A stretch of DNA of 64,000 nt from Caecitellus pseudoparvulus (GCA_965644315.1 CBFFRQ010000053.1:496001-560000), one strand, 5' to 3'; shown: positions 6,001-24,372, counted from the stretch's first letter. Translations and numbers: made by a program. The notes: generated by a model not told the origin, from the letters alone.

Positions 6001-9000
6001 TGCGCAGGCGTCGGGCTTTCCGGCGTCCACCAGCTGGAACTCTTGGCGATCACTACACGCGGGAGCAACTCCACACAATCTTGTTGACCCCAACTGCAGA
6101 GCTCAGCAGCGAGCGAGATAGGCGGGCTCAAATGCTCTTGCGCACGTACGGCTCAGACGGGGGCCGGGCCATCCACGACCTCGCTGCATCCCACTCAACA
6201 CCTGTTGTGTATGGCATCCCCGAAATAGCTGAAGCCCACGAAGTGCTTGCAGAAGAGCTTCGGTCACGAGGCGAAGTGTCTGTCATTCCCCAACTTGCGT
6301 TTGCAGACGAAGACGGCAGTAGAGACAACATTGGATGCATTGCGCTGGGAGCAGCTCAAGGAGGTGTTCTTGTCCGTTCCACAAAGAACCTTGTCCTTCT
6401 CGAGACGAGAGACGTGCCTTTACAGCCAGGCTCAACAACGGAACATGCTTTCTCCGTCCCAGGCAGCGTCAGCGATGCCGTCGCCTTCGGGCCTCGAGGC
6501 TGGGACGGCATTCCTGGAGCAGCTCGTCGGCAGATGCAAGCAGCTGGACTGCCTGTGCACGAGGTCCCACATGAAGCAAACAAACAACCTGGTTCATATG
6601 AAAAGGCAAGAAGCAGGGATGGTGCCTTTGCCACAAGCAGCCTGGACGGAGCTGCTGGCCGCCAGTGGAGTGAACAGTCGAGGATGGCTGCCCAGCATGG
6701 TTCACGTGGCTCGGGAACACTCGGAGCTTCGAAGATGCATGAACCAAGTGGTGCCTTTGCTGAAGCTGTGGGAGCAGCCCAAGAGTTCAACAAACGCCTT
6801 GCCACTGCAGAACGGCACACTTCCACTCCCGCCCATGGGATGGAACGTGTGGCGTTTGAGTCCGCTGCAGGACAACTAACCACACACGCGCTCAGGCTCG
6901 AAGGAGTCGAAAGCAAGCCCTTCATCATCAAGCATAGACACCCAGCAGCAGTACCCCCTTTATCCGTTGCAGGAGTAAGGGGAAGTACCGCAACCAGAAC
7001 TGAAGGCACGCCCCCCTCCCACGCTGCTCCCCCGAGCACCAGGCTGGGAACGAGCGGAGGACACTCGTCGATTTCACGGGCTGGCACCGCAGCGCTACTG
7101 AATGGTGAAGTGCCTCAAGCATACACCAGACTTGTAGGTGATCCTTCGTCGGTTGGTGCTGCAGCGGGTGCATCAGAGCTTGAAGCAGGCGCAGTCGGCG
7201 CGGAGTCACTTCCACCTGACGCAGCGGCGCCGGCCGGTATTGGCGACATAACATGGCTCCATGTCGGCGCTGAGCCCTTGCCGGCAATCGTGAGAAGGAA
7301 GCTTTCAGGAGAAGAAGACCCCGCAGAAGCCCTCAAGCGCGAGGAACGTAAGCGGCAACGTGCAGAGGCGATGAAGCGCCGCGCAGCCAAAGCGTCCGCA
7401 ACTGGACAGACCCCGCCAGACGAAGACACCGGCGACAGTGTTGCTGCGTGGGAGGATGAGAACCTTGTCAACGACTTTGAGCGAGAGACTGGCTGTCCAG
7501 GCATTCGGCCGCTGATCTCTGACTTGACAGTGACCATCACGTTCCACGGCGCGTTCTCAGGCAAGAGCGCGGAGTACATTCTGGGCCGCCTACAAGCAGC
7601 ACTTTACCGTGAGCCATTTGACCCCATTCCGGAAGTCCCAACGAACTATCATAAAGAAAGCGGGGTGTGTCTACCAGAACGTGTCACGTCACCCACAACC
7701 GCATCGGCGGGCGCAGGCTTGCGGCCGAGAGCTCTTGCTGGTGACAGCAATGCCTCAACTGCTCGCACTGTGCAGGGAGCAGATTGGCAGGCAAGCAGGG
7801 AAGGCCAACACCCTGGATCACCTTCTGCTGGAACTGCTTTTCCGTTACCTCCTTCAAGAGGCCCGCTCATTACACCTGGCGACCTGGACGCCCACTTAGA
7901 TGCACGCGCAAGGTCCGCAGTGCTGCAGGGTGAAGTGCACGGAACTGCCCGGGCTAGCAAGGGCCAGGGACCAATTGGTCTGCCTGGCATTGATGGAGGG
8001 GGCAGTGCAGAGTACACAATCGTGGCATCTCGGCCAATTAGTCAGGGGGGGAGCCAAGTTGGAAGCCGTGGGCACCGCGTGCACGCCGGGGCCCTCCAAG
8101 CGGTGCATGGTGTGCGGACACCGAGCAGGCCACACATAGACCAAGCATCGTCCACCACACAGGAAGGCTTCCCTGTCCTTCCTTGGCAAGCGAACCAGCA
8201 TGAGGAGCGCCAGCACACGGCATTCCACGCAGCGCTGCCATCTGACCGGAGGGAGTGGCTTGGGCCCGTAGGGATCCCCACGATTCCTCTCTCCGATGAA
8301 CACGCATACTGGCTTGCCAATCCAAACATCGCCCGTTTCGGTGAGCAAAGGCATGAACAAGAACCCGATCGAGCTGTGCGCGGTGGTGGCCCTGACCTCG
8401 ATGAGGATGGCTTCGGCTTGCAGGCTGAACAGGACCCGCGCGCTCCAAGAAACCTTGGGACGGCCGACACTAAACAACTAAGACGACATGGCTTGTTGAG
8501 TCCGGGTGGCGACAGTGTGTACACTGACGTGCGAGGCGGGCTGTACCCGGGCTCGCGACGGCAACGAAGGGGCCCACCACTGTACACCGGACCACCAGTC
8601 GACGTGTACGGTGTTCAGCCACTTCCACCAGACGCCAGCAGCGCGTCTGACGGTACAATACCTGCACACCGCCTTCCTCCACTTGCACGCCCGCTGCCAC
8701 AGATACAAGGCGTGCCCGCGGATCAGATAGTGGCCAGCATGCGCTGGCCCGTGGGGTACGCAGTGTCTGCAGAGTGCAGACCGAACACGCGAGGCGCGAT
8801 AGGCAAGATCACCATTCGCCATGAGCCATCCACGGCGCCAGTGCTGCCGGGGCAGTACAGTGTGTGCATCAGGGGTCTCACTCCAGGGAGTTACAGCGTC
8901 AGTGTTGTGGGCACTGTGGTGTACTCCGCTCGAGATGTGCTTGAGGGCGCTGTGCGTCGACTGAAGCAAGTGAGTGCTCGCGTTCCTCTGTGCCGTGCCG

Positions 9001-12000
9001 AACTGGGAGACATTCGTCAATCGTCCCGACTGGGAGAACGAAAACGTGCCCTCGTCCAAGATTTGATCCTGCGAACAGAGGAAGAGCTGAGCAGAATGTC
9101 GCACAGGACCGCTGCGTTGCGCCGGGCGCTGGAACGTGGAGTGGTGACGCGCGGGGATCTCGGAGAGGACGCCCACAACGAAAGCCTTGACCTTGCAGAT
9201 GGTGACGTGGAAGTCATTGGGGATGGTGCATCCGTCGGCACTGCATCCGGCTCCGATTTGGGCTTGAGCGATCTTGAGAGTAGCGACGGAAGCCTGTCCA
9301 GTGCCACCTTCGAGTCAGACACGGACTCTGAATCAGGCCTTTCTTCAGCCCAGTCGGCGACTGACAGCTCATCAGCAGCAAGTTCTTCACGTTCCTCAGA
9401 GCTGGATTCTGCCTCAGACAGTGAGACTGCCTCTACTTCGTCAGGCTCAAGTGAAGAGCGTGCTCGTGAAGCAGGGCTGATGGCCAAGAATCCCAGCGAA
9501 GTGGGTGGAACTGGGCAACGGCTGATCCAGCGGCAAAAGGCAAGAGCAGCAAAGATGGAGCGAGGGAGGGCCGCAGCTGTCCGCCTCGTCGAGCGGGGAA
9601 GGGCCCGGCGCACTGCTGCCGCTCGGGCCATGCAGCGCCGCCTTCGAGAGCAGCTGCCTGTCACGGAGCTCGTTCGAAGCTTGGTTCAGCGGCAGCTCAC
9701 TCAGCTGGAGGCAAGCTTTTCGACCCATGTTCGGCTGCTGAACATGCGGGAGGATGAGCTGCAGCAGATTGAAGACGGGCTTGATGCTCTGGAGGCTGCG
9801 GCACATGCACGGCGTGCCGAGATGACCCAGCTCTTGAGCCGCCTGAGGGAGTTCAAGCGACACCTCCCAAGAGCCTTAGAAGCTATGAAACTCGAACTTG
9901 GGCGCCCCAAGGAATCTGACCCGCATGCCCAAGCACGCAAAGAGCTGGCAAGCAAGTTGGGAGCGGAGCAGGTGCCCGGCCAGGCAGAAGTGGATGCACT
10001 CATCAGCAAAGGCTACGAGCAGCTGCTCCAGTATGATATCGAGCCAAGTGCTGAAAGTATTGCCTACAATCAGTCATCAGGGCCTGGGACCAGCTCGTCG
10101 TTTGCGGCGGGCCGCACGGGGACAGGTCCGAGGGCGCCGGCAGCAGCACCTCGAGCTGAAGAAGAGCACGAGGCCGTGCAAGAGCATCCATTAGACAGTG
10201 ACTTGGATTTCTTGCGCTACGGTCCTGAAATACTCAAGTGGAGACTGCAGCAACAGACCAAGTCCAAGCAGGCGGCGGAGGAGACTACACCAGCGGCCCG
10301 GGTCCGAGCAAAAGCCCTGCATGAGCTGACAAGGGAAGAGAAGCAGTGGATGTCTCTAGACCTCGTCTTGTACCCAGAGCTGTACGCCGAGAAGCTAGAG
10401 GAGGACTCGGATGATGAAATGGATGAGTTGATGTCGGCAGGCATCGCCATCTCCCGTGCGAACGAAGCAAGGAAGCCTAGGCAATTGCGATTGCCGCCCC
10501 GCAACCCAGCCATTGCACAAGCCATGACACTCGCCGGGTCTGCAAAGCAAGCTGAAGCGACTCCTCAGCGTGGTGCGCTGGTGGAATCAGGAGACGAACC
10601 AGGCACCTCCGCATCTATCCAGTACATGCACGAGGAGACGCTCTCGTCACCGTATGCAAGTGGCGCCGTGACAGGTGAAGCAGGGGGTTCAGAAACTGTC
10701 GTTACCGCGGGTGATGGTGCGGATGTAGGAATCCTTGCAGACTTGGATGAAAAGCCCGTGTCAAGGAGCCAAGGAGAGGCGGGTACGACGTTCCACGCGC
10801 TCAACAGGCTACAGCGGGTGCTGCCTGCGTGCAGGTACACAAGGCACGAAATCATGCGCATTCTACAGGTCCCTGTGCAGCAACTCAATAAAGCAGAACG
10901 TGGTGTGCGTTTACTTCTGCAGAAGTACCACGACAACGCTGCAAGAGTCCGCGCGAATAGGGAAGCTGCCGGCGACGGGACCGTGCCAAGCATGCCCAAG
11001 GAGGACAGCACGACAACTCTGCAAGCTTTGTACGCCAGAAAGGCGACTGGGGGTGATGATTCTGACTCAGATGCTGATGGTGCACCTGATCAGGGTCCCA
11101 CTGCGCCTGGCACGCGGACGCTGCCGAGCCGCTTGAAGCTTGGACCGCACGAGGTGCACCGAAGTGCTTCCCACCACATGCGAGCATACGCAGCCGTGCC
11201 TATTCCCAACGGGGCTCCCGAGAAGTTGCGATCCCTCTTGCTGCAGAAAACCAGGGTCCTGAATGAACGCTGGTCGATGCACATGCAGAGAACCCTGCGC
11301 GGGCATGACCAGCACCAGAACCAGGGAGCCAAACGCCTCCATGATTTCCTCCATGCACAACGCAACACGGGCACAAGAAAGCCCTGCGCCCCTGAGCAGC
11401 CCAGCGAGAGGGCCAAACCAGGTTCAGAAACAGAAGAAATTCCAGGTGTGCCAGACCGACACCGGAAAGATGCAGAGGCAGCAGCTGGCACAACGCTGGG
11501 CATGGCACGCTCGCATGCTGTGCCACTGAGCCGCCGAGCACCCCACCGCTCTGTTGACTTCTCCAAAGGATTCGAAGACGCTGCGCAGGGTGATGTTGAT
11601 GAAGTCTGCCGGAAACTTCTTGAGGAGTTGGATCGAGCGGCAGCTACGGGCGCGCCGTACATGGAGAGTTCCGCATTGCATGGGATGACACAGCGATATG
11701 CCACCGACGCACTGCAGAAGGAGCTCAGCATGGCCCTTGACCGACTCCTCCTAGCACAGGTGTTCGAACGGGAGGCAATTGAGGCGGCGCTCATCGCAGA
11801 GCAAGATAGCATGTATGCCCAGGATGCCGCTGAAAAAGCAGCGGAGCAGGAAAAGGCCCTCGCTGACGAGCGAAAGAAAGCCATGCAGAGGCTGGAGGAT
11901 ATGGAAGCCAAGCGGGCAAAAGCAGCTGTAGAAGAACTGGCCTTGCTGGGGAAGGGAGTCGAACTGACTGAGGAGGAGCATGCCGAGCGTGTGGAGCTGG

Positions 12001-15000
12001 CTGCCGCCGCTGCAGCTTTAGTCGCGGAAAGGGAGGCGCTGCAGGCTGCCATGGCAGACAAAGACATGGACTTCGGGGATGGTGATTCAACTGTGATGTC
12101 TACCGCAACAGCATCGGGGGGCAGCGTCGCAGGAGACGACCACGTTCTTGGGGGCGCAGACCCGCTGCAAGAGGTTGGCCCCTTGGCTAAGTGGGGGGAC
12201 CCCGACAAGCCCCTTACTCCACGTCGGATCGAGCGGCAACGCATGATAGACCTCATTGCACGCGAAAAGGCCAGGGCAGCTGCCCGCAACTTGCTGTCGG
12301 GGGACGGCACGGGGCGCGTGACGGCAGTGCAGCGGCGCAGGAAAGCTGAGCTCATGGCCATGCTTCAGGAGGGAATCCTCGTTGCTGAGGACGACCCTGA
12401 GGGTCGAGATATTGGAATCCCGGGTCTCAAAGTAAAGGACAAGAGCAAGCAGTCCTTGGCCCCCTGGTCTCCAAGCATGCCAGTGGAAGCTGCCACAGCC
12501 CGCTTGCTGGTCGTTGAGAAGGAGCTGCTTCGAGTGAGGACTCTGCCTGAGGACACCGGTTTCGTTGAAAGCAGAGTGCTGCTCTCTTTTCTGCGAGGAG
12601 GGCCGTCAAAAGTCCCCTACTTGGATGCAGTGTTCGAGCTGGGGTACGAAGTCGCAGAGCTGCAGAATGCTCTGCGCCTCAATGATCTTGACCGTGAGCT
12701 GCACAGAGGCTACAGCAGCACCAAGGACTGGATGACGACCTCTGTCTTGCATGGAACCCCCCAACAAGTTTGGAGGCTCAATGCCTTGGAGGCTCTTGAG
12801 CGGCAGGCAAATCGCATCATTGCCCGCCAAGTCGCCACTGGTCTCATTGAGGATGCACTGTCTTGGATGCTGGAGGGTTGGATTTTCGGCGAGCGCAAGT
12901 CTCACATGGCGACCCAGGGGTTTGTTCCATCTTTGAAAAAGGGTGGCGTGCTACGCCCGGGCGAAGGGAGCTCAAAAGCGGCAGTGGAGTTCTCCAAGGA
13001 AGGGCCAGCTGCGAGGGCCATGGCCATGGATGCCGCCCGCGGTCTTGAGCCTGCGACGGAAGATGCCGCCTTTGATGCTAATATTGTCGCCGCGGAAGGC
13101 ATTGTCCAACGGGATCCCCGAGGAGACAGGTTTCCTTTCGCGCACGCTGCTGTTCAAGCTGACGCTGCCCAGCAGCAACTCGAAGCGTACCTTGAGGGAA
13201 GTTTGGCAGCGGAGCAGCATGAGAGCCAACGCTTCTACACCCCACATGGAGAAATGCTCCATGAAGGTGGCATGGAAGGGGTATCGGAAGCCTCCATCGG
13301 GGCTGGAGGTGGTGGCTTGGGAGTGGACATGGAGGGTGTGCCAATGCGGGCAGATTCAGGAGCGCCAGCACCCTCACACGCAGCCACTGGCTCTAGTGGG
13401 CATTTAAAGCACGGTGGGTCACACCAGGGTGAGGTGATCTCTCGTGAAGGCACCGCTAACAGGCACGGTATGGCAACGCCAGTGGCCCACGGACTCCACC
13501 CGCCCCGCTCGTCTGGGGCACCGGACTCAGCATTCACCGCAGCTGGTGGTACAGTGGGTTTAAGTGAGGACGGGCACTTTCCAACCACACAGCTGTCACA
13601 GGGTGACTGGCAGGCAGCAGCCGCTGGGATCGGGGTCAGCAGCACAAACGCCACCTTGAAGCGAGTGAAGGGTGGCACGGAATGGCGAGAGCAACCGCCG
13701 GCTGCGAGCAAACAGGAGGCGGCAGCAGCGCTCTTGAAGCGGCAAGGGCCCTTCCGGGACAAAAAAGGTGCAACGTCGGTATTGAAAGCAGCAGCTGGAG
13801 ATGAAGACAGCAAAGGACACTTAGGGGTCGTTGGAGGGGACGGCCGCATGCGTGTTGAGGAGCGCTGGCAAAACATTCACAAGGCTGTCGCTGCTCGGAA
13901 CGCCATCCGCATCGCCGTATCAGCGTATCAAAAAGTAGACAAGACCATGGATGAAACAGAGCGCACCCTGAAGTACGGCATTTTCTGCATGGCGCTTGTG
14001 TACTTCAGAGCCATGACTCAGTTGAAGGAGCAGCAGGCTATTCTCTCTGGGGCTCAAGACGAAGCTTTCCTCACAGGAGGTGCTACGGGGGGGCAGCAGC
14101 ACACACAGCAGACAGCCGAAAGGTGGAAGATGGAGCTGGCAGCGGGGCGTCGAGCGGAACGGCTGCATACCATGGCTTCCGTAGACTCACGAGCCCTGGC
14201 AGGTTTCACTAGAAAGGCTGAGAAGGTGCGCGAGCGTCGATTCAGGGCCCACCAAGCTGCAGTGAGTCGGAATACGCTGTTCACTAACCGGCGATTGGCC
14301 GCTGGCACCATTCAGCGCATTTGGAGGGGCTACGTGGACCGGGCCCGGGTAGCGGAGATCCGGGACGATCGACTTGCAGCAATTCGACAGGCGGCGCTGG
14401 AACAAGAGGCCGCAACTGCCATCCAAGCTGTGTACCGAGGCCACTTAGCAAGAGCATTTGTGCAGCATCAGCGCGAGGAGATGGCAGCCTTCTTGCGCAA
14501 GCTTCGGCGGCAGGAGGACGAAGAGCTGCAAGCTGAGTTTTACCAGCAGAACGCAGTGGCACGGACGAAAAAACGCATTGCGGACTACTACAAGCAGCGC
14601 ATACTGCGGCGGCAAGCCATGGCTCGTCGCATGCGTCGCAACTTGGCAGCTGATGTCGTTGAGTTGCCACCAGACGACGGAGATGGTGCGGTAGTCATGG
14701 CACAAGGTGCGATCGAGGATGCCCGCGAGCAGGCCGAGGACAGAGAGCGGGACGAGTGGGCAGGGGTCACAGCGAGTGGGCTGCAAGAGCTCGGCAGAGA
14801 CAAGACCTTCTTCAAGCTCATCACTGCAGATGATCTGCAAGCCGCCACTAAGTCTCGCCTGGTGCAGGAGGAGGCAGCGCATGCGCTTGCCGCAGCTGAC
14901 GAGAGGAGCTGGCGCGCTGCCAAGGCTGCTGCGGCAGAAGCAGTGGCTGCTGCAGCGCAGCAGGAGGCCGACGAGCGGGTAAAGGCTGAAGAGGCTGCTG

Positions 15001-15071
15001 CTGCAGAGCAAGCCGAGGTTCAGGCGCTGGAGGAGGAGCAAGCCTGGCACACCAGGGCCGTGTCTCATTGA
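3..15071 (+). CDS. Giant intronless protein (>5,000 aa, 5'-truncated by window): alpha/beta-hydrolase-fold domain, coiled coils, internal repeats, two C-terminal IQ motifs
   Basis: The frame is open from position 3 to TGA 15069-15071; the ORF-track start at 117 is an internal GTG. Hydrolase-like motifs: VLFLPDIFD, VVLVGSGFGG, VLLIAGTDD, GGHAIL (about 930-2890). IQ motifs: IQRIWRGYVDR and IQAVYRGHLAR (about 14300-14460). The last four residues and the stop come from the transposon TIR. Confidence 0.85.
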   Translation, partial: QGGDLGKSAVARQLDLSIIHQAEAEGGDSASTPRGESAVPANQRMVRSGRGSRSGLQQAQRRSRGRRTQRLRRLVAAARKRPGGAAAIYNAKVVNTLPGSAPFDGSALGEEQRARISHLARKSRFDMPKEFRRPQSMVERYMGAVSARGYAKVADHWLAALTEVQGELSAPDIGLPFWGMPGIPPDISRSMTARSSHLHPDGGFSGFWGTHARPRTLQPFSQPSLWSAVQTPALDTSGMFPGFQRTEAGGTASAHAPTPESSNFKRRTVHIHGHTRFELDVDTSLLYHVAAGPPLISGETHMPYSSGRPVDVLFLPDIFDDMGTILGDMDPLLSALPGSRLLVAHYPGMPGTSWNEHAHEGTDGASRALDHMEEVQQILIDRLGRSFRGAARPEADTAVDKMSVTSKSASAGAPAEVQEQKLGTRKWLSPAFLVSAIAALLDHVQAAGEWGPAQAQDAAGRKAQAASHELGRDVVLVGSGFGGHLLTILAGEVLGRRTRRKGKPGIAPQNRTLASATRAVVLINSYSRMDAELGLVMQRIAAVHGPLAAMAGVMDRNRAVDAPLGAFGGGRPRVAKRPRSIAPTGAPGTAACTVDTRAPQHRTIKSGATPDDPNTLPLPGSPSQRMGLDGRSPLSSVPLSSTQRSLRQSIGVGKRRLMYTEQGGRGKSKKWQKLKQASQSLSALSSTSSVGDTNTDQAVPGASASLQSAEAVRIVRKDAVRLYDSIMFSPGYKSAVGAGFAVGEFWSRNPSLAEADPYLDYGIARISDAAAKHPFDALEGITACHFPVLLIAGTDDAWVLPYHSLSIARRRRAAESSALALARGAGHSDQSDAEAQWPDFLKQAGHVMHTKIQKAFLDPPPGQALADFEATCDAVAEGDADTLLGTAAEEEAKMLSTVPRNKRQRTARLKSGRVVRIDVSSSETALQGLRPTYTAFLKGGHAILQERKTALLSLLQAVILGHEEGPVGGGGFGVLPSGMSVQDAQISAADPAARVLEPGRPPLRVNPPLVLGSGASPASQELPSKDTEHEGGAQQKERLLRELRSRGLPTHGTEFELLSLLSDALATEDGSNRRKAWLAIPKDKREMVKQKQVLAQHRVQYRARQREAQLRGQTLTLEEAKAQVDAEREQGEREDEERARMAEEEALTRLSAARKAREAAEEREAALQAAKLADLRSGLVSPARETSAAAAEAEAAEAGAKAAALAMLRSRKEAGAEPHLASFEEAARNIEVKLKGEQAGGYFLSSDNAHEFGVGGARLLQDASALRSRKKAALRRWQRLDQRVKLIEAEVAKAKAAVHVIDRSLAAAQREKDAMLRTLARHGNTKAQHSILVRTIAEEVFELRERRESKKRAQKALAGQMESALLEMDVIGSSAHAVVAKARNIEDTLGKARVKASQMIVSRRAKKAEALKLKEGSLDAARAAASEMGRLKLRMAAVVKEFQRVKKVHKKYVDTNFYHMGYPQRVPTKVLRRHLRGRIRHIKERKEELRNTSAKARAAVSEAEATIQVTTEEVGLLSKLLQLIVDCISAGPPSAEDLREELRLDTPAAGPSQGTEDASGEDQQQGSLAMMPRRERNVVWRSSTLHALRETNVFAEAILSAEPPEVLAALGARFVSPRIPDSLKSNPVIVDALHTLFGGGARVRDDCKLAMVTRWKPAVERLPEEKRWVAMDRHLHPQAYEQLTDEDRQTMERDPLYRCTIPVDVLKRLASLPASPLTALAFITAPSHVELHRLLGKFTHGVGESTERLRDMSLGAKAMAAAAVARGYMARTKLPSNRTPEERDWVSLDQVYRPNLYLDVADMDDLDPLLGAALHAEEGYRRRGAGHRRRHSFSGASLSQQAGQAPGHRNKGTHGSRAEESFQASLSDDEEFRALHSALPVGEPGVPAAWAEPSSSRPPWEDGLGKTPRFNPALDSDLFSVDPMTARYGQPGVADPRGAKHMFHKLMHYKFRRERAAKAARERIKAERKAAWLKAKADAEMASIAAEEKALIGGVSVGDMRRRRAFRRPPAGTLGDHYTREQLHTILLTPTAELSSERDRRAQMLLRTYGSDGGRAIHDLAASHSTPVVYGIPEIAEAHEVLAEELRSRGEVSVIPQLAFADEDGSRDNIGCIALGAAQGGVLVRSTKNLVLLETRDVPLQPGSTTEHAFSVPGSVSDAVAFGPRGWDGIPGAARRQMQAAGLPVHEVPHEANKQPGSYEKARSRDGAFATSSLDGAAGRQWSEQSRMAAQHGSRGSGTLGASKMHEPSGAFAEAVGAAQEFNKRLATAERHTSTPAHGMERVAFESAAGQLTTHALRLEGVESKPFIIKHRHPAAVPPLSVAGVRGSTATRTEGTPPSHAAPPSTRLGTSGGHSSISRAGTAALLNGEVPQAYTRLVGDPSSVGAAAGASELEAGAVGAESLPPDAAAPAGIGDITWLHVGAEPLPAIVRRKLSGEEDPAEALKREERKRQRAEAMKRRAAKASATGQTPPDEDTGDSVAAWEDENLVNDFERETGCPGIRPLISDLTVTITFHGAFSGKSAEYILGRLQAALYREPFDPIPEVPTNYHKESGVCLPERVTSPTTASAGAGLRPRALAGDSNASTARTVQGADWQASREGQHPGSPSAGTAFPLPPSRGPLITPGDLDAHLDARARSAVLQGEVHGTARASKGQGPIGLPGIDGGGSAEYTIVASRPISQGGSQVGSRGHRVHAGALQAVHGVRTPSRPHIDQASSTTQEGFPVLPWQANQHEERQHTAFHAALPSDRREWLGPVGIPTIPLSDEHAYWLANPNIARFGEQRHEQEPDRAVRGGGPDLDEDGFGLQAEQDPRAPRNLGTADTKQLRRHGLLSPGGDSVYTDVRGGLYPGSRRQRRGPPLYTGPPVDVYGVQPLPPDASSASDGTIPAHRLPPLARPLPQIQGVPADQIVASMRWPVGYAVSAECRPNTRGAIGKITIRHEPSTAPVLPGQYSVCIRGLTPGSYSVSVVGTVVYSARDVLEGAVRRLKQVSARVPLCRAELGDIRQSSRLGERKRALVQDLILRTEEELSRMSHRTAALRRALERGVVTRGDLGEDAHNESLDLADGDVEVIGDGASVGTASGSDLGLSDLESSDGSLSSATFESDTDSESGLSSAQSATDSSSAASSSRSSELDSASDSETASTSSGSSEERAREAGLMAKNPSEVGGTGQRLIQRQKARAAKMERGRAAAVRLVERGRARRTAAARAMQRRLREQLPVTELVRSLVQRQLTQLEASFSTHVRLLNMREDELQQIEDGLDALEAAAHARRAEMTQLLSRLREFKRHLPRALEAMKLELGRPKESDPHAQARKELASKLGAEQVPGQAEVDALISKGYEQLLQYDIEPSAESIAYNQSSGPGTSSSFAAGRTGTGPRAPAAAPRAEEEHEAVQEHPLDSDLDFLRYGPEILKWRLQQQTKSKQAAEETTPAARVRAKALHELTREEKQWMSLDLVLYPELYAEKLEEDSDDEMDELMSAGIAISRANEARKPRQLRLPPRNPAIAQAMTLAGSAKQAEATPQRGALVESGDEPGTSASIQYMHEETLSSPYASGAVTGEAGGSETVVTAGDGADVGILADLDEKPVSRSQGEAGTTFHALNRLQRVLPACRYTRHEIMRILQVPVQQLNKAERGVRLLLQKYHDNAARVRANREAAGDGTVPSMPKEDSTTTLQALYARKATGGDDSDSDADGAPDQGPTAPGTRTLPSRLKLGPHEVHRSASHHMRAYAAVPIPNGAPEKLRSLLLQKTRVLNERWSMHMQRTLRGHDQHQNQGAKRLHDFLHAQRNTGTRKPCAPEQPSERAKPGSETEEIPGVPDRHRKDAEAAAGTTLGMARSHAVPLSRRAPHRSVDFSKGFEDAAQGDVDEVCRKLLEELDRAAATGAPYMESSALHGMTQRYATDALQKELSMALDRLLLAQVFEREAIEAALIAEQDSMYAQDAAEKAAEQEKALADERKKAMQRLEDMEAKRAKAAVEELALLGKGVELTEEEHAERVELAAAAAALVAEREALQAAMADKDMDFGDGDSTVMSTATASGGSVAGDDHVLGGADPLQEVGPLAKWGDPDKPLTPRRIERQRMIDLIAREKARAAARNLLSGDGTGRVTAVQRRRKAELMAMLQEGILVAEDDPEGRDIGIPGLKVKDKSKQSLAPWSPSMPVEAATARLLVVEKELLRVRTLPEDTGFVESRVLLSFLRGGPSKVPYLDAVFELGYEVAELQNALRLNDLDRELHRGYSSTKDWMTTSVLHGTPQQVWRLNALEALERQANRIIARQVATGLIEDALSWMLEGWIFGERKSHMATQGFVPSLKKGGVLRPGEGSSKAAVEFSKEGPAARAMAMDAARGLEPATEDAAFDANIVAAEGIVQRDPRGDRFPFAHAAVQADAAQQQLEAYLEGSLAAEQHESQRFYTPHGEMLHEGGMEGVSEASIGAGGGGLGVDMEGVPMRADSGAPAPSHAATGSSGHLKHGGSHQGEVISREGTANRHGMATPVAHGLHPPRSSGAPDSAFTAAGGTVGLSEDGHFPTTQLSQGDWQAAAAGIGVSSTNATLKRVKGGTEWREQPPAASKQEAAAALLKRQGPFRDKKGATSVLKAAAGDEDSKGHLGVVGGDGRMRVEERWQNIHKAVAARNAIRIAVSAYQKVDKTMDETERTLKYGIFCMALVYFRAMTQLKEQQAILSGAQDEAFLTGGATGGQQHTQQTAERWKMELAAGRRAERLHTMASVDSRALAGFTRKAEKVRERRFRAHQAAVSRNTLFTNRRLAAGTIQRIWRGYVDRARVAEIRDDRLAAIRQAALEQEAATAIQAVYRGHLARAFVQHQREEMAAFLRKLRRQEDEELQAEFYQQNAVARTKKRIADYYKQRILRRQAMARRMRRNLAADVVELPPDDGDGAVVMAQGAIEDAREQAEDRERDEWAGVTASGLQELGRDKTFFKLITADDLQAATKSRLVQEEAAHALAAADERSWRAAKAAAAEAVAAAAQQEADERVKAEEAAAAEQAEVQALEEEQAWHTRAVSH

Positions 15072-15072
15072 G
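15056..15072 (+). repeat. Left terminal inverted repeat
   Basis: GGCCGTGTCTCATTGAG, preceded by TSD CAG; matches the reverse complement of 20049-20065 at 15/17 positions. Confidence 0.9.
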
Positions 15073-15246
15073 GCCAGCGGAGGCCTCTGAATCGAGAAAA
15101 TCTGTGAAACGAGAATGCATTTTTTGAAGTTCACGGAAAAGTGCTGCAGGCAGCATGTTTTGTCACCTTGACACTAACAGAGGATGTTAGACTTGAACGG
15201 CCGCTCTGTCGTGTGCAACAGAGCGTTGTTTATCGAGCCTATTAGC

Positions 15247-15259
15247 ATGCGGAATTTGC
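15247..15259 (+). repeat. Subterminal inverted repeat ATGCGGAATTTGC (partner at 19890-19902)
   Basis: A perfect 13-bp inverted copy GCAAATTCCGCAT lies at 19890-19902; both copies are 160-190 nt inside the element ends. Confidence 0.7.
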
Positions 15260-15374
15260 CACTTGCTGGCAGTGGTTTGTGTACCATGGCGAGCAGTGCA
15301 GATATGGATATCAAACTCTACTTTTAAACTATTCACAGTAAGTTGTGAGCATACTCTTGGAATGATTTGCTGCC

Positions 15375-17595
15375 ATGTCTGGCCGCAAGCGCCCCCGGAA
15401 TGCACGCGTTCAGGCAGATGCGCCGACGAGTGGCAAAAGAACCGCAGTTGAAGGCTCGCAAGCGGACACACATGCACTGGTCCGACAGTTCCTTCAAGGT
15501 AACGCACCGACTTCCCGACTGCGGACGGGCGCGAGGCTCGGGGCAGCAGGACGGGTGTTTGAGCTGCCTGCAACGCCTCCAGGAAGCGAACTCGCTGCGC
15601 AAGAATCACCCGCCATCGCAACGCCTACCAGACCAGTCCGGATTGCTGCCCTTACAGCAAGCATTGCCAGGAGGATGAAGACAAACGCTAAGGAACAACT
15701 GGAAGCTTTCGGTTCGTTTTCATTTCCGCTGTGTGAAACTCCGAAACGCTTCTCGCAAACACGCCTTCCTGACTCTGCCCGCAGACGAGGTCGTTGACAT
15801 GAGTGGTGATGAGGGCAAGAGTGACAGTTCAAGTCCTGACTTGGAGAGTGGTGGTGTGTCCTGGACAGCTGGCAGCCCTTCCCCACCACGGAGTGCTGCT
15901 GGTGCCGTCGGCGCGACACCAGCTGCCACTTCCCCTGCCCGTGCGTTGATGCGTCTCGACTCAGCGAGCCCAATTCCGTGGGCCTCTACTGATCGAGCTC
16001 TGTTGCAAACACCGTCCAAGAATGGGGTGCAGACGCACCCTGACAAGAAGGAGTTCGCCACCTTGATGCCGTCGTCGACCTGGGCTGCCTTTGGAAACAA
16101 AGCAAGTGCATGGAGAATGTCTGGAGCTATCGTTCGTCTGGGTGTTCGTGAGGGTACCATTGACTACTCATCTCTTGGGGGTCGTGTTGTCTCGTCGGGT
16201 GAGCCATGCCCGGAAGGCTCTGACAGAAGCCTGTTCCGGACTTTTGCCACACAAGGGAGCAACAAGATGCGAAGTGGCATTGTGGGCAAGAGCCTAGCTC
16301 ACAAATTCTTGCCGTTGCTGCTCACTGCCTTCGAGGAGCATGACACGAACATGCTAGGAAGGCCATGGCCGGAGCGAGACGACTCAAAGTACATGGTGTT
16401 GGTTTCAACACCAGGTAGTGATTCCCAAGAAGCCTTCCTGTCGTGGTCAGGCTTGGTCCTGGTTTCAAGCCTCCTTCGTGAGGCTCTGGTTCCAGCTTCA
16501 GGTACTTGGGCCAGCCTCGAAACGTTGAAGAAACAGGTTGACATCATCAACGGGTCTGAGGGCAGAAGGACGGGAAGCGGGGGGGCAAGCGAACCCACAG
16601 CCCCTAGCCACCCTGGTGCTCCCTCTCTTGATTTAAATGGAAAGAAGTACACACGTTGGGACATCACGAAGGTGGGGTGGAGCAGGGCACGAAACGCAAG
16701 CGCCGCTGCGCGCTTGCGCTTCCAGCGCCTGCGGTGTAGCGTAACGAACAAGGAAATGTGGTTGCCTGTGGGACCAACTGATGACTTGCGCTATCCACCC
16801 CTGAACGGTGGACTGCTTCCGGGCGAGCTGATGAATTATGCAAGCGTGTGCCAAGGCAAAGCCAGGCCAAAGGCAACGATGTCTTCAGTGCCTCGCAACA
16901 TCACCAACGGGATATTTGCAGAGGCTAGATCTGAAGGATCACACACAGTAGCCTCGCTGTTGGCGAGTGGCAGGCCCGCTGCGTTGCCCACTGAAAGTCC
17001 GCGACAGGGCGGAGAGTACCTATCAGGTGCGGGGAGTGGAACGAGCACGGGAAGCCGTGTTGCTGCTGTTGCAAAAGCAACTGGAGCCCTGGATGGAGGT
17101 CGCCTGGGGTCTGGCACGTCACCACCAGCCGCAGGCATGCGTGACATCGTTGCCCGTTTGGCAGATTCGCTGGAGAAACGACAGGTTGCTGAAGAGGCAG
17201 CACGGGAACGACAAGCACAACAGGACGCCTCACTTCTTCAGTTTTTCCAGCAGTCCTTGCAAGTGCAGCAGCCCGCACCTTCGCTTTCGGTGCCTGCACC
17301 AGGTGCTGCTGCCGCACATAGTGAGCGTGCGGTAGATGCAGCGATATCAGGTGTAATTACAAGAGTGCAGGGGTGGTTGGACCTAAGCATCATTGACGGT
17401 GACCTTAGCATGCAAGAGCAGGTTCAGACTGTTTTGGAGCAGCTGCACAGCGGAAGTGTGCCTCCAACCTTGCGTGGCATGCCACCGCACCCGCTGTCAG
17501 ACGCAGACAAGGAGCTGAAGGTCGCACGCGCCCGACTTCAAATGGTTACAGCCCTGAAGAAGCGTAGTGTTGCTGGGCAACCCATGCAGTCATGA
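15375..17595 (+). CDS. Transposon accessory protein (ORF2), 715 aa, exons 15375-15711 + 15785-17595; positional equivalent of the Harbinger Myb/SANT DNA-binding protein
   Basis: The two ORF-track ORFs join in frame across a 73-nt intron (GTTCGT donor at 15712, CCTGAC branch, GCAG acceptor at 15784). The N-terminus MSGRKRPR is NLS-like. Trp-spaced helices and RRTGSGG only weakly resemble trihelix/Myb proteins. Confidence 0.75.
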
Positions 17596-17710
17596 ACATG
17601 AGACAACACACTGCATTATTGACTGCCAACAGAGTCACCTTCCCAGTCACTCCCTTCATCACCTTCGCCGGCAGCCCCAGGCTGTTCAGGTGCTTGCAGG
17701 TGCAGAAGGG

Positions 17711-19444
17711 CTAGCTCTTCAACTCTCTCGCGGCACCACTGGGCAGTGCCCACCATGATGGAGCGATACTGAACCCCAGCATACTTGAAGATGGTGTGGG
17801 TGGAAGCTGGCCAAGCGCCAGCTCCAGCACTTGCGTCTTCCATCCCATGGCACTCGGCATACTCCATGAAGGGGGCTGCGCCTCAAGCAAGTCCTCTACC
17901 ACCTTTGCCGTTGCTTCTTCCAGCAGGTCACCCCAGACAGTCCCCGGCGCTGTCACATCAAGGGCATGCCACACAGATGCCCGCAATGGCAGAGCTCGCA
18001 GTACAAAGTTATGCAGTGCTACAGCTACACGTAGACGCAGTGCAACTGCTGCTGGCCCAAGGTTTCCATTCGCAGTGTTGTTCAAGATGCGGAACCTGTT
18101 CTTGAGCTCTCCAAATGCACATTCTACCTTAACTCGAATGTGCAAAAGTGCATCGTGGAAAATTGTCACCAAATGATTCGGCTGCACCACATCAGTGTCC
18201 CGCTGGTCGAACGGAAGAAGTAAGAATGTGTACCCCGGACGAAATCCCGAGTCTGCTGCCAATGTATATGGGAGTGGACAAGGACGTAAGCTTGGGTTCC
18301 CGACCATTGCCGCAAACATGGGAGACCTTATGAGCTTCCCCCGATCGCTTTCGGCACCAGCATACCCAATGTCTGCTTGCCAGAAGAGTCCGTGGCCACT
18401 TACCATGCACTGGGCACTAACCGAAGCCACGCCATCCTTGTTTATGTATACGCCCTTTCCACTATCTTCACTGATGTAAGCACGCACATGTGTATCATCC
18501 ACGCTGCCTGCTACGCACGGCAGCTGCATGCCTGACAGGGCAAAGTTCAATCGTACACTCTCCATCCACTCCCCAGAATCTGGTGCTGGCATGTACACCT
18601 GCTGTTCAAACATGCTGGATGAGATAGACCGCAAGAAAACCTTTAGGATTCGACTGCATGTGGACTTCGATGCCCCAGTGAACGCTTCTTGTCCAGCTCT
18701 CATGTTGAAACCCTTGCACATATAATGCACTCCAAGGCAACAAGCCTCCAGCCAACTGAAAGTGCATCCTTGGCCGCAGAATGATGAGTCCACAGCACCC
18801 CACCAGTCTGCCACTGATGGCTGTTGCTGCACCATGGGACGCTCGCATGCCCCAAGGCGACTGCAGTGCTCGTGCAGACAGTCTTCCCTGTGGCGCCGAA
18901 GCTGTCTCTGCCAGGTCCTGTGCTCTTGTGAGTCTGGTTCCTCTGCAGGTTCATCACCTGCAAGCTCCACAGCGTGGGCCTCTACTTCCACGGGTAGGAT
19001 CGAATGCATGACCCACCTGTACCAGAGTTTTGGTGCAGAAGATTTCATGAACCACACCGATAGAGCTAAAATAGTGTTCACACCAACAGAGCACAACTGC
19101 TTCATAGTATACTGCAACACCGTATGTGGGGTTGTGCAAACCTCGTGCTCTTCGAGAGGCACTCCATGTTGCCGTGCCACCCACGTCCTCACACCGGATG
19201 CCAAACCTGCAAGAGGATTGGTGCGGCCACGTGCGCTGGCCCTCACGCCCTCCTCCAGAGCACAGTCTTCATCGAAGCACGGTAGTGGCACGGCCTGCTC
19301 GTGTCCATCTTCATCGGCCATTGCTACCACTGCCAGCAACAGTGCTGCTTCTGTGGCAATAAGTGCTTGGAGCGCTTGCAACCTACGGACATGCTGCCGC
19401 CGGCGCAACAGTAAAAAGGAAACCAGGAATTGCATGCCAGACAT
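17711..19444 (-). CDS. Harbinger/PIF DDE transposase (HARBI1-like, DDE_Tnp_4 plus HTH)
   Basis: Motifs: HTH LGVHYMCKG..FTGASKSTCSRI; VAGSVDDTH (D1); VSAQCMV; GAESD; LAADSGF (D2); RVKVECAFGELKNRFRIL (E); LHNF. The ORF is uninterrupted; first ATG at 19444. Confidence 0.93.
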   Translation of the reverse strand: MSGMQFLVSFLLLRRRQHVRRLQALQALIATEAALLLAVVAMADEDGHEQAVPLPCFDEDCALEEGVRASARGRTNPLAGLASGVRTWVARQHGVPLEEHEVCTTPHTVLQYTMKQLCSVGVNTILALSVWFMKSSAPKLWYRWVMHSILPVEVEAHAVELAGDEPAEEPDSQEHRTWQRQLRRHREDCLHEHCSRLGACERPMVQQQPSVADWWGAVDSSFCGQGCTFSWLEACCLGVHYMCKGFNMRAGQEAFTGASKSTCSRILKVFLRSISSSMFEQQVYMPAPDSGEWMESVRLNFALSGMQLPCVAGSVDDTHVRAYISEDSGKGVYINKDGVASVSAQCMVSGHGLFWQADIGYAGAESDRGKLIRSPMFAAMVGNPSLRPCPLPYTLAADSGFRPGYTFLLLPFDQRDTDVVQPNHLVTIFHDALLHIRVKVECAFGELKNRFRILNNTANGNLGPAAVALRLRVAVALHNFVLRALPLRASVWHALDVTAPGTVWGDLLEEATAKVVEDLLEAQPPSWSMPSAMGWKTQVLELALGQLPPTPSSSMLGFSIAPSWWALPSGAARELKS

Positions 19445-20048
19445 GGTTGTATGATCTGTGCAAGACAATACGGGGAGTCTTTTCTCACAGTGCCTTGTTC
19501 GGCCTGTCTCAACCAAGACTCATTTCGATTTCCGCGAAACTCGCCTTGCGGGAAGTGCAAGCCTTCGAGGTGAAAATTGTGAATTGCAACCCTGGGACGC
19601 TGATCGTTTGATCGGTAGTTCGACACTGTGAAAGACACATGGGGGCTGGAGTGCTGGTTGCGCCGGTGTCGAATGCGGGTTTGTGAGCACCTCGATGACG
19701 ACGCAGGCCCTCTGTTCGTAATCGACAGACAACTCACCCGAATCGAAAGAGGGTGATCACCAAAACGGCCCGATTCCTCGAAATTCGGCCCACACTTCAT
19801 AAAAATTTGCATTGGATCACGAAAGTGTACGAATACGCGCAAGTAGACTGGAACATAAGACAGCAGCCTCCTTTTACAAACGTGGGCAAGCAAATTCCGC
19901 ATCCAGTTTGCATCACAGACCCAACCTTTCAAGCACACTCTGACAAAAATAATGTATGCATTCGTTATTTTATACTCAGTACATTATCACATACAACTAT
20001 CGCCAACATGCCCTCCTGACAAGCTCAAAAACGAACCCCTCCTAACCA

Positions 20049-20065
20049 CTCAATGGGACAGGGCC
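20049..20065 (-). repeat. Right terminal inverted repeat
   Basis: CTCAATGGGACAGGGCC, followed by TSD CAG. Confidence 0.9.
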
Positions 20066-20650
20066 CAGGGTGGGAGGCTTGTGAAGCGGAGGCAGCAGCG
20101 CAAGTGCGGCAGGCCCCACGGCAACCAAGAGAATGGTCGAAGCGTGCAGTGGATGCTGTCTGGGGGGGGTGCGGTATGACCCCTGTGTGCGCCCTGTTCA
20201 ACAAGGCATGCCTTGCGTCCCTCACACCAGAACCAGAGGAAAGGGAGGGAACTTGGCGTGGCGCGAAGCGGCTCCCAGTCGGAGGGCGCCACTGCAATGC
20301 TGCTCAACATACAAACTCAATGCAGCCGAACATCAGCGTGTGGGAGTGGCCTGTACAACGCACTTCCTCCTAACATCTACGCGTGAGCCCTGGCGAGGCT
20401 GCCGGGGGCTCAACCAGCGAAGTTTTGCCGGGCAGGGGCACTTCCGAGTTGCAGGCTGCCGCGCGCACTTGTTGAGCTTCAGGAGCTCACAGGTGTGCAG
20501 CGCAGACCTGTCCTCGGAGGCACTGAGCCTTCTTGTCGTGCGTTCGCGTGACGGGTCGTGGGACTCCCCGCAGTTGGAGCACGGATCCACCCCCAGCCAA
20601 GCCAAAGCAGCGTTTCAGGCACCCCGCGAAACGACCTGCGCTCGCCCAGC

Positions 20651-23600
20651 ATGGCTTTTCAGACACCCCAGCAGGCCCCCAGGGGGACCCCTACGCACCC
20701 TCCAACGATGGGCCCGGAGTTCCCACACAAGTTGCTCCTTCACACCTATGCTTGCCAGGGGGGGAAATGGGCGCCGTTGGAGCCAGTGCAGCAGCTTGGC
20801 GGGGCGCGCCCTGCCCCGCCTCCCGTGCGCCTCAAGTCCCTCAAGGTCCTGACCTACAACGTATGCTTCGAGTGCCATAGGAAGGACATCAGGTGAGGCC
20901 GGCTGCCCACGGCTTGTTTGCCGAGATTGTGGGCAGCTCCAGCCCACACACGACTGTGTGTCACCGCACCACCTCCTGCCGCTCGCCCCGCAGGGAGCAA
21001 AAGCTGATCAGCCTCATGTTTGACGCTGACGCAGACTTCCTGTGTCTGCAGGAGGTTACACCCGGGTTCATGAAGCGCTTGTTTCAGACACGCTGGGTGC
21101 AGGAAGCGTACGTTGCCTCAGATGGCCCTCGAGGGCGGACAGTGGCGCAAGGCAAGCGCGGCGCGAGTCTGCAGTACGGCTGCGTCATCTTGGCCAAGAA
21201 GCACTGGCGGCCGTCCTTTACCGCGTGGGCTTTGCCAGGCAGGCTTTGCCGCCACCTGATCACGGCGCAGTGCTGCGCCATGCCGGAGAGGGCCGTCCCC
21301 GGCGTGGTGGTGGGCGGGCATGACCTGCCCGAGCCGGAGCCTGGCTCTGCTACGCCGTGCGCCGCCCCTGCGGCTTGCCTGCCGAGCCCAGCTGGGGACA
21401 TGCTGCACGAAGCTGATCGTGGCACCCCCAGCCCGCCTTGTCGCCAGCCTGAAGTTGACCCCCAGGACTGCCTCAGCCTCGTCATCGCCACGAGCCACCT
21501 GGAGAGTGGCAAGGGTGCCACGAAGTTTCGAGAGGAGCAGCTAGTGCACATCTTTGGACTGCTGGGGCTCTTGAGCGAGGACACGACCAGGTCTGCGGCC
21601 ATATTCATGGGGGACTTCAACTTCTCGGATGGCTGGCCAGAGGAGCGGCTCCTCAGCCCCGACTTCAGAGACGTGTGGCTGGAACGCCACAGGGCGGAGG
21701 ATGGCTTGACCATGACGTCTCAAGGCACATACAAAGACTGGCGGCCGGACCACATCCTCTTCCGGTCGCCCACCCCCCGTGGGCTGCCAGCTGACCCCAC
21801 CGAGTTCTTGATGGAGCCCAAGTCCATTCACATCATTGGTAAAGATCCTCTGCCCCTGCAGCCTCATGAGGCCCCATCCGGCCTAGACAGGTTCCTCACC
21901 CCCTCTGACCACTTTGGGCTGGTCGCTTCTCTGTCGCTGCAGCGCGGCATTCCCATGGTGAACGAGGTGGAGGAGGGGGAGGGGGAGGGGGAGCAAGTGG
22001 GTGGTCCCCTGGCCCCCGGCTTCCCCTCAGCAGGCAGCTCCATGACCGTGGAGGGTGCAAGCGCTGTCCCCCCCGGGACCTGGGACAGTGCTCGAGGCCC
22101 CAGTGCTTTCAGTGGCGCATCAAAGGCGGGGGCAACCCCTAGTGCATCGGGGGACACCCTCCCCCCCCTCATGCGCAGGGCGAGCGAGCACCACCTTGAC
22201 TTCCCTGCATCTGCCTTGGAGGGGTGTGAGGGAGGGGTCCACTCGCCTATGCCCGGGACGGGCGTGTGTGATGCTGGGCACCCCACGACGCCCCTCCTGG
22301 GTGCCATGAAGGGCACTTGCCCACCCTCCGCGGCTTGCCTAACGCCAGCGGTGCCAGTGCCGGTACACACGCCTGTCGCCAAACCGCAGCAGTACACTCT
22401 GGATGGCGGGCTGATCGACATCAGTCCGCCTGAGCGCGCCCGCCGCCCCTTGGCGCTGACAGCAGAGGCTCAGCGCCTGCAAGATGCGGGCGATGGCCCC
22501 TGTTCCTCTAGCCTGGCCCTGCAGCGTCTGGACGACGCATCTGGCAGTGGCGGGCGCGGCGTAGACCTCAACTCCACGCAGCCCGAGTTGAGGAGCCGCT
22601 TCCAACTGACGAACAGTGCCGCTCCAGCCAGCAGGTTGGAGCTGGGCACTCCCACGCCTGAGGTCCCGTCTCATCGGCTGTTGGGGAAGCTGGTGTCTCC
22701 CCCCACGACACACCGGGCATCTGCCCGTTGCCTGGATGCGGGCAGGTCGCGCCTCCGGTCCACTGGGCAAGGGTTTGGCCGGCTTGGCGCACAAACAGTG
22801 CTGCACGCCGGCCACACGAGCCTCACACCCGCCATGCAGGGCCTGCAGCTGTCGCAGAGCAGCCGAAGCTCCCCTGGCCGGAGCGTGGAGGAGAGGGCGG
22901 GGTCTGTGGAGCGCAAGGCCGCCCGCAACGGCGACGACCCGCATGACGACGACCTGGACGTGTCTGGTGACACCGAGCTGCTGCAGGTGGATGGCGACGA
23001 CCTGGGCCACTTGGCCCTGCAGCAGCACCCGCAGGTGTCCCCCTCACGGGTGTGCGGCATGGGCAAGGGTGCACCAGAGTCTGATTTCGCGTGGGCGCCG
23101 GCGCCGCACTCCGTGCACGGCGAGGGGACCGACTCCATGGACGTGCTGGGCCCTTTGGACGGCGCAGACCTGGCCAGCCGGAGCCTGGAGTTGCCGAGCT
23201 CGGCGCAGTTCGAGACAGACCTGGGGCTGGCTGTGCGTACCCAGGGCCTGGACATGGGCGTGGCAGCGGCCAGCGCTCCCGTGTCGGGGCACAGCGTAAG
23301 CAGCCTGTACACGCCGCACTTCGCAGCGGATGGGGGGACGCCTGCCAGCTTCTCACCTGCCGTGACGCCGGTGGCCAAGCATGAGGGGGCGCCCTACGTA
23401 CGACCCCAGCGGCACTCTGCAAGCTTCCGGGCGGAGGACAGCTTCCAAGACTTGCAGCAAGACAGCGAGCTGGCCAGCATCCCGTTCGTGCAGCACGACT
23501 CTGGGGCATCAGCCCACCTTCCACAGCGGCCTAGCTCGGCCAGGAGCACCGCCTCTTTCCAGTCCAGCCTCGGGGGCAAGCGCCGCGGCCGCTCTGAAGC

Positions 23601-24372
23601 GCGCATTGACGAGACCTCCCAGCAGCAGTTCTTTTTGGCCCCTCGCACGGCGACGCTGCGCCCGGGTCCGGAGATGCTGCGCAGCGGGGCCCAGACACCG
23701 GGTGCCAGAAGCCAGCAGGCTGAAGTGCTGAGTTTTGACGGCAGTGGGCAGTCCCTGCGGCGGAGCAAGTCCCAGTATGCGCTTGATGGACGGGAGCGAG
23801 CACGGACGTCTACGTCGGTGGGGATGGGTGGAGGCTTTCCCGATTTCCATCCAGCCGACGTGTCCCCTGAGTTGGCACACGATTTTGACGCATCCGGAGC
23901 CAGCAGGCCCATGGTCGCCACCGACTCGTCGGAACCCGACGCTCACCCCGTGTCGGTGACAGGCGACAGCTATTCCCATGGCTCCCCTTTTAAACACCAT
24001 CGGAACCTCAGCCGTCTCGACTGCGGCTCCTCGTGCAGCGCGCAGCTGTGTGAGCCGGCCTACTCTGCAAAGCCAGCCCTGATCGCGGGACAGAGCTCCC
24101 TGTCAGGGGCTGCGCCCGCTGCGAGTAGGGCTGTGCTGGCGCACCCAGTAGCATACCACAGCAGGGGTGGGCACACCCGGACGCACTCCCAGGCCACAGA
24201 GGAGGATTTGCAGCTGCCCGCTCAGCCACCCGCTGCACCGGCGCCAGCAAGTGCTGCCGGCGCCATGCCAGGGGGTGTCTTGACACAGGTGAACCCTAAC
24301 ACTGTTCCATCGGAGACTGGGACCAGCGGCTGCACGCCAGCCAAGCACCGACCCCGGCAAGGCACTGCGTAG
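20651..24372 (+). CDS. TDP2: Endonuclease/exonuclease/phosphatase (EEP) protein, TDP2-like, with long disordered C-terminus; intron 20893-20993
   Basis: Motifs VLTYNV, LCLQEV, ATSHLES, FMGDFN, DHILF and PSDHFG. The GTGAGG...CGCAG intron restores the frame. Confidence 0.7.

Follow-up and report, generated by a model that had tools for sequence, protein, structure and literature searches.

The DNA considered here, hereafter the window, is a stretch of 64,000 nucleotides (nt) from Caecitellus pseudoparvulus (GCA_965644315.1, CBFFRQ010000053.1:496001-560000), and positions are counted from its first letter. It holds a two-gene DNA transposon of 5,010 bp at 15056-20065 (+ strand), whose bounds are set by 16 genomic copies that differ right outside a 3-bp repeat. 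The left terminal inverted repeat (TIR; 15056-15072, + strand, 17 bp, GGCCGTGTCTCATTGAG) came out of a repeat search with an 86% match over 21 nt including the target site duplication (TSD), and the right TIR (20049-20065, - strand, 17 bp) is its reverse complement, with 15 of 17 positions matching and 2 mismatches. Both termini begin with GGCC, as do the ends of rice mPing. A TSD of CAG lies at 15053-15055 and again at 20066-20068; it is evident in the sequence, in the flanks of other copies, and in a metagenomic contig that leaves out the element together with one CAG. Judged from the window copy by itself, this duplication might extend to as many as 6 bp (CCAGGG); comparison with the other copies settles its length at 3 bp. 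Further inward is a 13-bp subterminal inverted repeat, with its left arm at 15247-15259 (+ strand, ATGCGGAATTTGC, 191 nt from the end) and its right arm at 19890-19902 (- strand, 163 nt from the end). This motif has two exact inverted matches in the window against 0.04 expected by chance and, by analogy with related transposons, is a candidate protein-binding site. The G+C content of the element is ~0.51 to 0.58, compared with ~0.60 in a giant open reading frame (ORF) on its left and 0.64 to 0.77 in the DNA on its right. The TIRs, the CAG duplication, and the subterminal repeat had all been named in an initial annotation made from the sequence alone, and each is present as described.

The transposase ORF, as assembled, occupies 17711-19516 on the - strand and encodes 601 amino acids (aa) from a TTG, with the first ATG at 19444 and a DDE domain at aa 340-503. 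This domain matches Pfam DDE_Tnp_4 (PF13359; E = 8e-13, 48.7 bits, cut-off 24.8), and the protein also scores just over the threshold for Plant_tran (PF04827; E = 6e-5, 23.2 bits, cut-off 22), while the bacterial insertion sequence (IS) models of NCBIfam gave no matches. D340 (codon 18497-18499), D422 (18251-18253), and E465 (18122-18124) are invariant in an alignment of 15 sequences, and the ORF is open throughout, in agreement with the earlier description of an uninterrupted transposase with all three catalytic residues. An exhaustive HMMER search of 1.84 billion representatives returned 424 matches, only five of which reached E <= 1e-30 (51 to 31% identity). These five clusters are all metagenomic, from marine or other sources that include TARA Oceans, which upholds the proposed divergence of the lineage, and the cluster records of 20 relatives comprise marine (TARA) metagenomes and a few eukaryotes, with no family names. 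Word-index protein searches with the transposase, with exon 2 of the partner gene described below, and with a three-sequence partner alignment found no matches. The VDDTH motif, flagged initially as unusual, is indeed there; however, DDTH is common to the four nearest relatives, and more distant ones carry G, C, V, or N after the catalytic D. The N-terminal ~250 residues align only with the nearest relatives, which have likewise long N termini. Among the listed transposase differences from relatives at 93 to 97% identity, 13 of 16 are synonymous.

It is important to point out that the end of the transposase gene is affected by a run of five G at 17871-17875. We aligned contigs of four public runs to positions 14600-20500 (5,901 letters), with X1 denoting the source run. 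In X1, the sole contig covering the site has an extra G behind 17870 at a depth of 1948/1948, which equals that of the entire element. Two diverged relatives, one in X5 and one in X7, carry the extra G too. Two of the assembly copies (C45 and C3) also have six G and a 633-aa ORF, and the window and 13 other copies have five. The probable true C-terminal part, 17616-17870 (- strand), is in frame only with six G and would place the stop 20 nt from that of the partner gene. The six-G frame aligns with the C termini of the relatives, and its differences from them are synonymous in 4 of 4 cases, versus 0 of 3 in the assembled frame. Because of the read contig, the C45 and C3 copies, the C-terminal alignment, and the synonymous changes, the five-G run is most likely a homopolymer error of the assembly, and the gene is open either way. 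A systematic error of this kind may affect other genes of the assembly as well.

A second gene, on the + strand, converges on the transposase. Its underlying ORFs (15375-15797 and 15733-17595) would be joined in frame by a putative 73-nt GT..AG intron of phase 1 (15712-15784, + strand), giving a putative exon 1 at 15375-15711 (+ strand; 112 codons plus 1 nt, with a basic RKRPR...KR near the start, in a frame open for 140 codons), a main exon at 15785-17595 (+ strand; 603 codons), and a predicted product of ~716 aa. An alternative donor at 15499 (AAG/GTAACG), also of phase 1 and better-looking, and an unspliced start at ATG 15799, yielding 598 aa, are equally possible. The intact, spliced, convergent partner of the initial annotation is thus convergent and open in all 16 copies, but its splicing is a prediction from the GT..AG that joins the two ORFs. 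The listed differences from diverged relatives are synonymous in 11 of 20 cases and fall at third positions in 12 of 20 (P = 0.013). Because the main exon is open in the 16 copies, third-position changes are in excess, and relatives have an ORF in the same place, the sequences argue for a real partner gene under constraint.

The protein encoded by the main exon is an orphan without a known domain, and the expectation that it would be a Myb/SANT protein found no support. Neither partner exon, searched singly, matched Pfam at up to E = 5, a feature search of the ESM Atlas gave no usable matches, and hhalign detected nothing between the partner and its counterparts in two complete metagenomic relatives (L022 and L023). 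For the partner ORFs of relatives, the one Pfam match was to PHD_3; it scored far under the threshold and fell on a short ORF adjacent to one of these partner ORFs. AlphaFold predictions reached a predicted local distance difference test (pLDDT) score of 40.8 without an alignment and 33.5 with a three-sequence alignment of the conserved part, too poor to judge the fold, and a cryptic domain is possible. The partner is weakly similar to the partner ORF of the closest metagenomic locus (24% over 202 aa, E = 0.002), the two having F.P.L...PWPE in common.

Within the 30.6-Mb assembly to which the window belongs, we found at least 16 full-length copies, 100% identical, on 16 contigs at 16 different sites, in addition to three fragments. 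The left flanks of all 16 are different, and the transposase ORF, like the partner ORF, is open in every one. Given 16 identical copies, the features of the element are far beyond chance. Both flanks are present in six copies, each with a perfect 3-bp TSD (CAG four times, CTG twice). Genome-wide, there are 17 occurrences of the 20-nt left end and 11 of the 20-nt right end, the latter always in full copies. A genome-wide search for MITEs (miniature inverted-repeat transposable elements) or deletion derivatives, using end patterns with up to 2 mismatches, recovered only full copies and one 447-bp left-end fragment. In contigs from the source-sample reads (X1), the depth is ~1950 to 2000 inside the element versus 83 to 100 in the flanks, a ratio that suggests about 20 to 24 copies. 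All 16 target sites conform to C-N-G (CAG 9, CTG 4, CCG 2, CGG 1; that is, 13 CWG and 3 CCG or CGG). Across 23 half-sites, position 1 is always C and position 3 always G (23/23), A or T stands between them in 20, and there is no information beyond C-W-G that would indicate an extended or palindromic target.

The window locus also exists without the element. A contig of X5, a 2019 marine metagenome, is 2,735 nt long at a depth of 16.6 and runs from 14600 to 15051 and then from 20065 onward, omitting precisely 5,013 bp, the length of the element and one CAG together. Its flanks differ from the window at 0 of 452 nt on the left and 3 of 436 nt on the right, so that the locus is unoccupied in a marine organism that is either the same or very closely related. 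Contigs of X1 cross both junctions unbranched (records 1 and 8), a contig of X3, which is perhaps the same strain as the source, crosses the left one (record 9), and both flanks are single-copy in the assembly. Since the junctions are crossed unbranched and the flanks are single-copy, the insertion appears to be fixed in the strain that was sequenced. In the metagenome population, it appears to be missing.

A second empty site lies within the assembly itself. The copy on contig C45 (L011/L038, C45:1-8014) interrupts a dynein heavy-chain ORF just past D6, with AAA_9 and D6 encoded in its left flank. Contig C54 (L039, C54:377974-382476) contains a 99%-identical stretch with a single CTG at the C45 insertion site, and its ORF continues uninterrupted for 4,510 codons and reaches into the Dynein_C domain. 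C54 is the allelic empty site, and the pair implies heterozygous insertions, haplotype contigs, and a diploid or polymorphic source. Because of the X5 empty site and the intact C54 allele, it is clear that the family moved very recently. The initial suggestion of a recent and possibly active element is therefore well founded, with at least 16 copies 100% identical, open ORFs, perfect TSDs, and two empty sites, and the element is probably still mobile.

At the window locus, the element sits inside the reading frame of a giant single-copy host ORF (117-15071, + strand; 4,984 aa), as first described, though four sense codons from its stop. The host ORF now ends at a TGA in the left TIR, and the native stop codon of the empty allele is at 20082-20084 (+ strand), X5 having no listed difference in 20069-20084. 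The occupied allele ends in ...WHTRAVSH (TGA at 15069-15071) and the empty one in ...WHTRVGGL (TGA at 20082-20084); the two products are of equal length, and the in-frame insertion changes only the last four residues. Damage to the coding sequence is minimal because the landing site is four codons from the native stop. The initial annotation had attributed this to the ends of the element, which seemed to limit damage to the host gene. This does not hold for the family, as other copies cut genes in mid-frame: the C45 copy truncates the dynein heavy chain, and the C7 copy lies in the middle of an 890-codon ORF. Further copies were located in a gene for a leucine-rich-repeat protein, between genes, and in a tandem-repeat region (one each). 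The three frames entering either end meet a stop within 4 to 23 codons, as expected of noncoding DNA, and tolerance of the insertions is better explained by position, heterozygosity, and recency.

Metagenomic relatives have the same layout, consisting of a transposase and a convergent ORF of 500 to 827 aa without a Pfam match. Two of them, L022 (633-6044; 5,412 bp) and L023 (140-5938; 5,799 bp), are complete, with the convergent two-gene layout and perfect TIRs of 24 bp and 19 bp, respectively. TIRs of the related metagenomic elements begin with GGGGGG and GGCGGC, and in two of these elements they start GG..G.TGT.CA; the TIR of the window family was not found in L047 or L020. The TSD of L022 is CTG if the boundary is shifted by one base, although TSD readings in the relatives are ambiguous, as runs of G and C blur the boundaries and contig flanks may come from different copies. 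The L022 and L023 partner proteins are 25 to 29% identical to each other and share a C-terminal Cys-rich motif that the window element's partner lacks. The two-gene architecture is thus conserved across related elements.

Taken together, we interpret 15056-20065 as an autonomous DNA transposon that moves by cut and paste, belongs to the PIF/Harbinger (PHIS) superfamily, and duplicates C-W-G at its target, a reading to which we assign a probability of about 0.9. It is an element of an ordinary kind, from a divergent marine lineage, that has very recently been amplified. The features expected of PHIS elements are a DDE_Tnp_4/Plant_tran domain, a D-D-E triad, and TIRs with a 3-bp TSD, all of which are present, and the description of a two-gene PIF/Harbinger-type element is upheld by these together with the second ORF. 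A Myb/SANT or trihelix domain in that second ORF was not detected by Pfam (E <= 5) or the ESM Atlas, though the ORF itself is present and constrained. Several points weigh against this interpretation or parts of it. The role of the partner is assigned by analogy, to a protein with no Myb/SANT or other domain and with pLDDT values of 41 and 34, and its gene model, predicted from sequence, has three possible starts or splices. The assembled window copy has a shifted transposase C terminus, and if the five-G run were real in 14 copies, a conserved C-terminal motif would be lost there. Placement among the PHIS groups relies on the TSD and not on a phylogeny, the read-derived contigs are compatible with a rare empty allele in the strain, and the case for current movement or expression is an indirect one; no RNA run was found.

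By its CWG target, the element fits the NuwaI type of PIF/Harbinger elements. NuwaI elements are defined by a CWG TSD, are ~4.5 kb long with TIRs of 12 to 61 bp that usually start with GGG, encode a DDE protein and a Myb/SANT protein, and have been reported solely from animals, in 16 genomes (Han et al. 2015, Mob DNA 6:12; PMC4482050). The element described here shares the 5'-CWG-3' TSD, the two ORFs, a similar size (5.0 kb versus ~4.5 kb), and a TIR length within that range. In contrast, it comes from a marine protist and not an animal, its TIRs start with GGC (GGCC) rather than GGG, no Myb/SANT domain is detected in its second ORF, and 3 of its 16 sites are CCG or CGG.

Ping/Pong of rice and Harbinger3_DR of zebrafish each require both of their proteins, and the second protein of Harbinger3_DR serves both to bind a subterminal motif and to import the transposase into the nucleus (PMC2836001, PMC9710019). 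These systems, including mPing, resemble the window element in having a DDE_Tnp_4/Plant_tran transposase with a D-D-E triad, short TIRs, a 3-bp TSD, a second protein, and subterminal motifs. They differ in their target (TWA versus CWG here), in transposase size (usually 400 to 500 aa versus ~610 to 630 aa here, with an N-terminal region of ~250 aa), and in the partner (300 to 400 aa versus ~600 to 716 aa here, with no detectable Myb/SANT or trihelix domain). Unlike Ping/mPing, this family has no MITE derivatives in its genome that the end-pattern search could find. A partner without a Myb domain is not unprecedented, because Pangu elements likewise have a second ORF without known motifs; their TSD is ANT, their group adjoins bacterial IS5, and their hosts are protists, algae, animals, and fungi (PMC4482050). 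Pangu and the window element are thus alike in having two ORFs, the second motif-less, and in occurring in protists, whereas the CWG TSD and the lack of an NCBIfam IS match set the window element apart.

It is conceivable, if rather unlikely on present evidence, that the element and its few marine metagenomic relatives form a separate, undescribed PHIS clade currently active in a culturable marine protist. Such a clade would be marked by the long transposase N terminus, the DDTH motif, CWG targets, and a large, fast-evolving partner that is not of the Myb/SANT type. If it exists, the element might be usable as a native insertional mutagen.

By analogy with Ping/Pong and Harbinger3_DR, the partner protein (~600 to 716 aa) would bind subterminal DNA, perhaps at the 13-bp inverted motif, and bring the transposase (~609 aa from the first ATG in the six-G frame, 633 aa from the TTG) to the ends. 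The transposase would then cut at the GGCC termini and integrate with a 3-bp stagger at CWG. The window copy landed four sense codons ahead of a stop and replaced the terminal residues VGGL with AVSH.

The strongest rival to the autonomous transposon is an autonomous introner, i.e., a 5-kb element that is spliced from host transcripts between a GT of the left TIR and an AG located at the right end or in the TSD, which would make insertions into coding exons tolerable, and we consider it improbable. Transposon-derived introns are known and provide a precedent (PMC9860276, PMC12130899), and the window element resembles introners in being a DNA transposon with TIRs and a short TSD that has entered the coding exons of an intron-poor marine protist (PMC9860276, PMC12130899). 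Suitable dinucleotides exist at 15060 and 15062 (GT) and at 20061 and 20068 (AG), and pairing 15062 with 20068 leaves 6 additional nt in frame, given a CAG TSD and a host gene in the same direction. However, five of six GT/AG pairings shift the frame (+11, +4, -4, +13, and -2), and a CTG, CCG, or CGG duplication, as at 7 of 16 sites, provides no AG. An ORF of 500 codons or more reaches five insertion sites, each time on the + strand of the element, but five of five in one orientation amounts to only P = 0.06, and other sites are intergenic or have ORFs on the opposite strand. Splicing would also be needless at the window copy, where a stop follows within 5 codons, and tolerance of the dynein insertion is already accounted for by heterozygosity with an intact allele. 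Known introners are nearly all short and nonautonomous (PMC12130899), whereas this element is autonomous, 5 kb long, and mostly out of frame in its splice geometry, and no RNA run was found to show splicing.

Still less credible is an artefact in which the assembler placed the element at the window locus or copied it to contig ends. Besides the homopolymer error inside the element, what speaks for it is that 10 of the 16 copies lie exactly at a contig end or 6 to 10 nt short of one (the starts of C76, C45, C90, C79, C178, C88, and C3 and the ends of C38, C43, and C18), the right end always outward and the left flank attached (10:0). We rejected a biological absence of right flanks at these positions, because contig C137 begins with CAG and the right flank of one of these copies, a flank also seen in reads. 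For the same reason, the breaks are contig cuts at the right boundary of the repeat and not invented copies, and the element accounts for many contig breaks of the assembly. The 16 different left flanks and a read depth equivalent to about 20 to 24 copies likewise favor genuine insertions, and the possibility of chimeric junctions, raised in the initial annotation, is removed by the X1 and X3 contigs that cross them.

That the locus is immobile, a transposase-derived host gene pair kept by selection, is refuted by copy number and empty sites: both ORFs do show a synonymous excess relative to diverged relatives, but a lineage of active transposons should be under purifying selection as well, and a HARBI1-like domesticated gene would be single-copy, kept in place, and without TIRs or a TSD, in contrast to at least 16 copies (16 of them identical, at unrelated sites, with TIRs and TSDs) and to precise empty sites in the X5 metagenome and the C54 allele, all of which favor mobility. 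With these results, both conditions that the initial annotation had named as refuting it are decided for a mobile element.

For the autonomous transposon, the implications are mainly genomic. Transposition is reshaping the genes of a compact, almost intron-free genome now, and CWG-targeting Harbinger-type elements are extended beyond animals. The case is unusually clean: all copies are identical, one locus is filled in the strain but vacant in the sea, and the dynein insertion is heterozygous. The element is also a candidate for a native transposon tool, and its partner is a protein whose fold merits study. Knowledge of how such elements work is unchanged by the finding.

Pieces of related elements occur in other samples and as older remnants. 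In X5, which has the empty window site, there are only diverged element pieces (93 to 98% identity) at depths of 4 to 8 versus 16.6 for the host flank, and a differently named organism (B) has pieces at 92 to 99% as well; the burst of 100%-identical copies may be particular to the strain that was sequenced. One X5 copy of ~95% identity (window 18750-19527) is cut at 19527 and followed by TTAGGG telomere repeats, as if a chromosome end had been healed within a copy of the element. The three old fragments of the assembly, L018 (C171:13155-16575), L017 (C87), and L019 (C23), are 93%, 99%, and 84% identical to the element, respectively. L018 retains the left TIR, preceded by CTG, and lacks ~28 nt near the left end (window ~15083-15112), and its match to the element ends at ~15502, just beyond the candidate donor at 15499. 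In the flanks of the C7, C60, and C61 copies, ORFs with 962 and 612 codons appear repeatedly beside different insertion sites. They probably represent other repeats, so that some copies lie in repeat-rich small contigs.

As for the host genome, its genes are largely intron-free and some are very large, including at least 17 dynein heavy-chain genes that each lie in a single open frame of 3,400 to 9,400 codons. The sole Pfam match of the giant ORF in the window is an IQ motif near aa 4764, and the next ORF downstream of the element (20893-24372) is a separate gene with an endonuclease/exonuclease/phosphatase domain.

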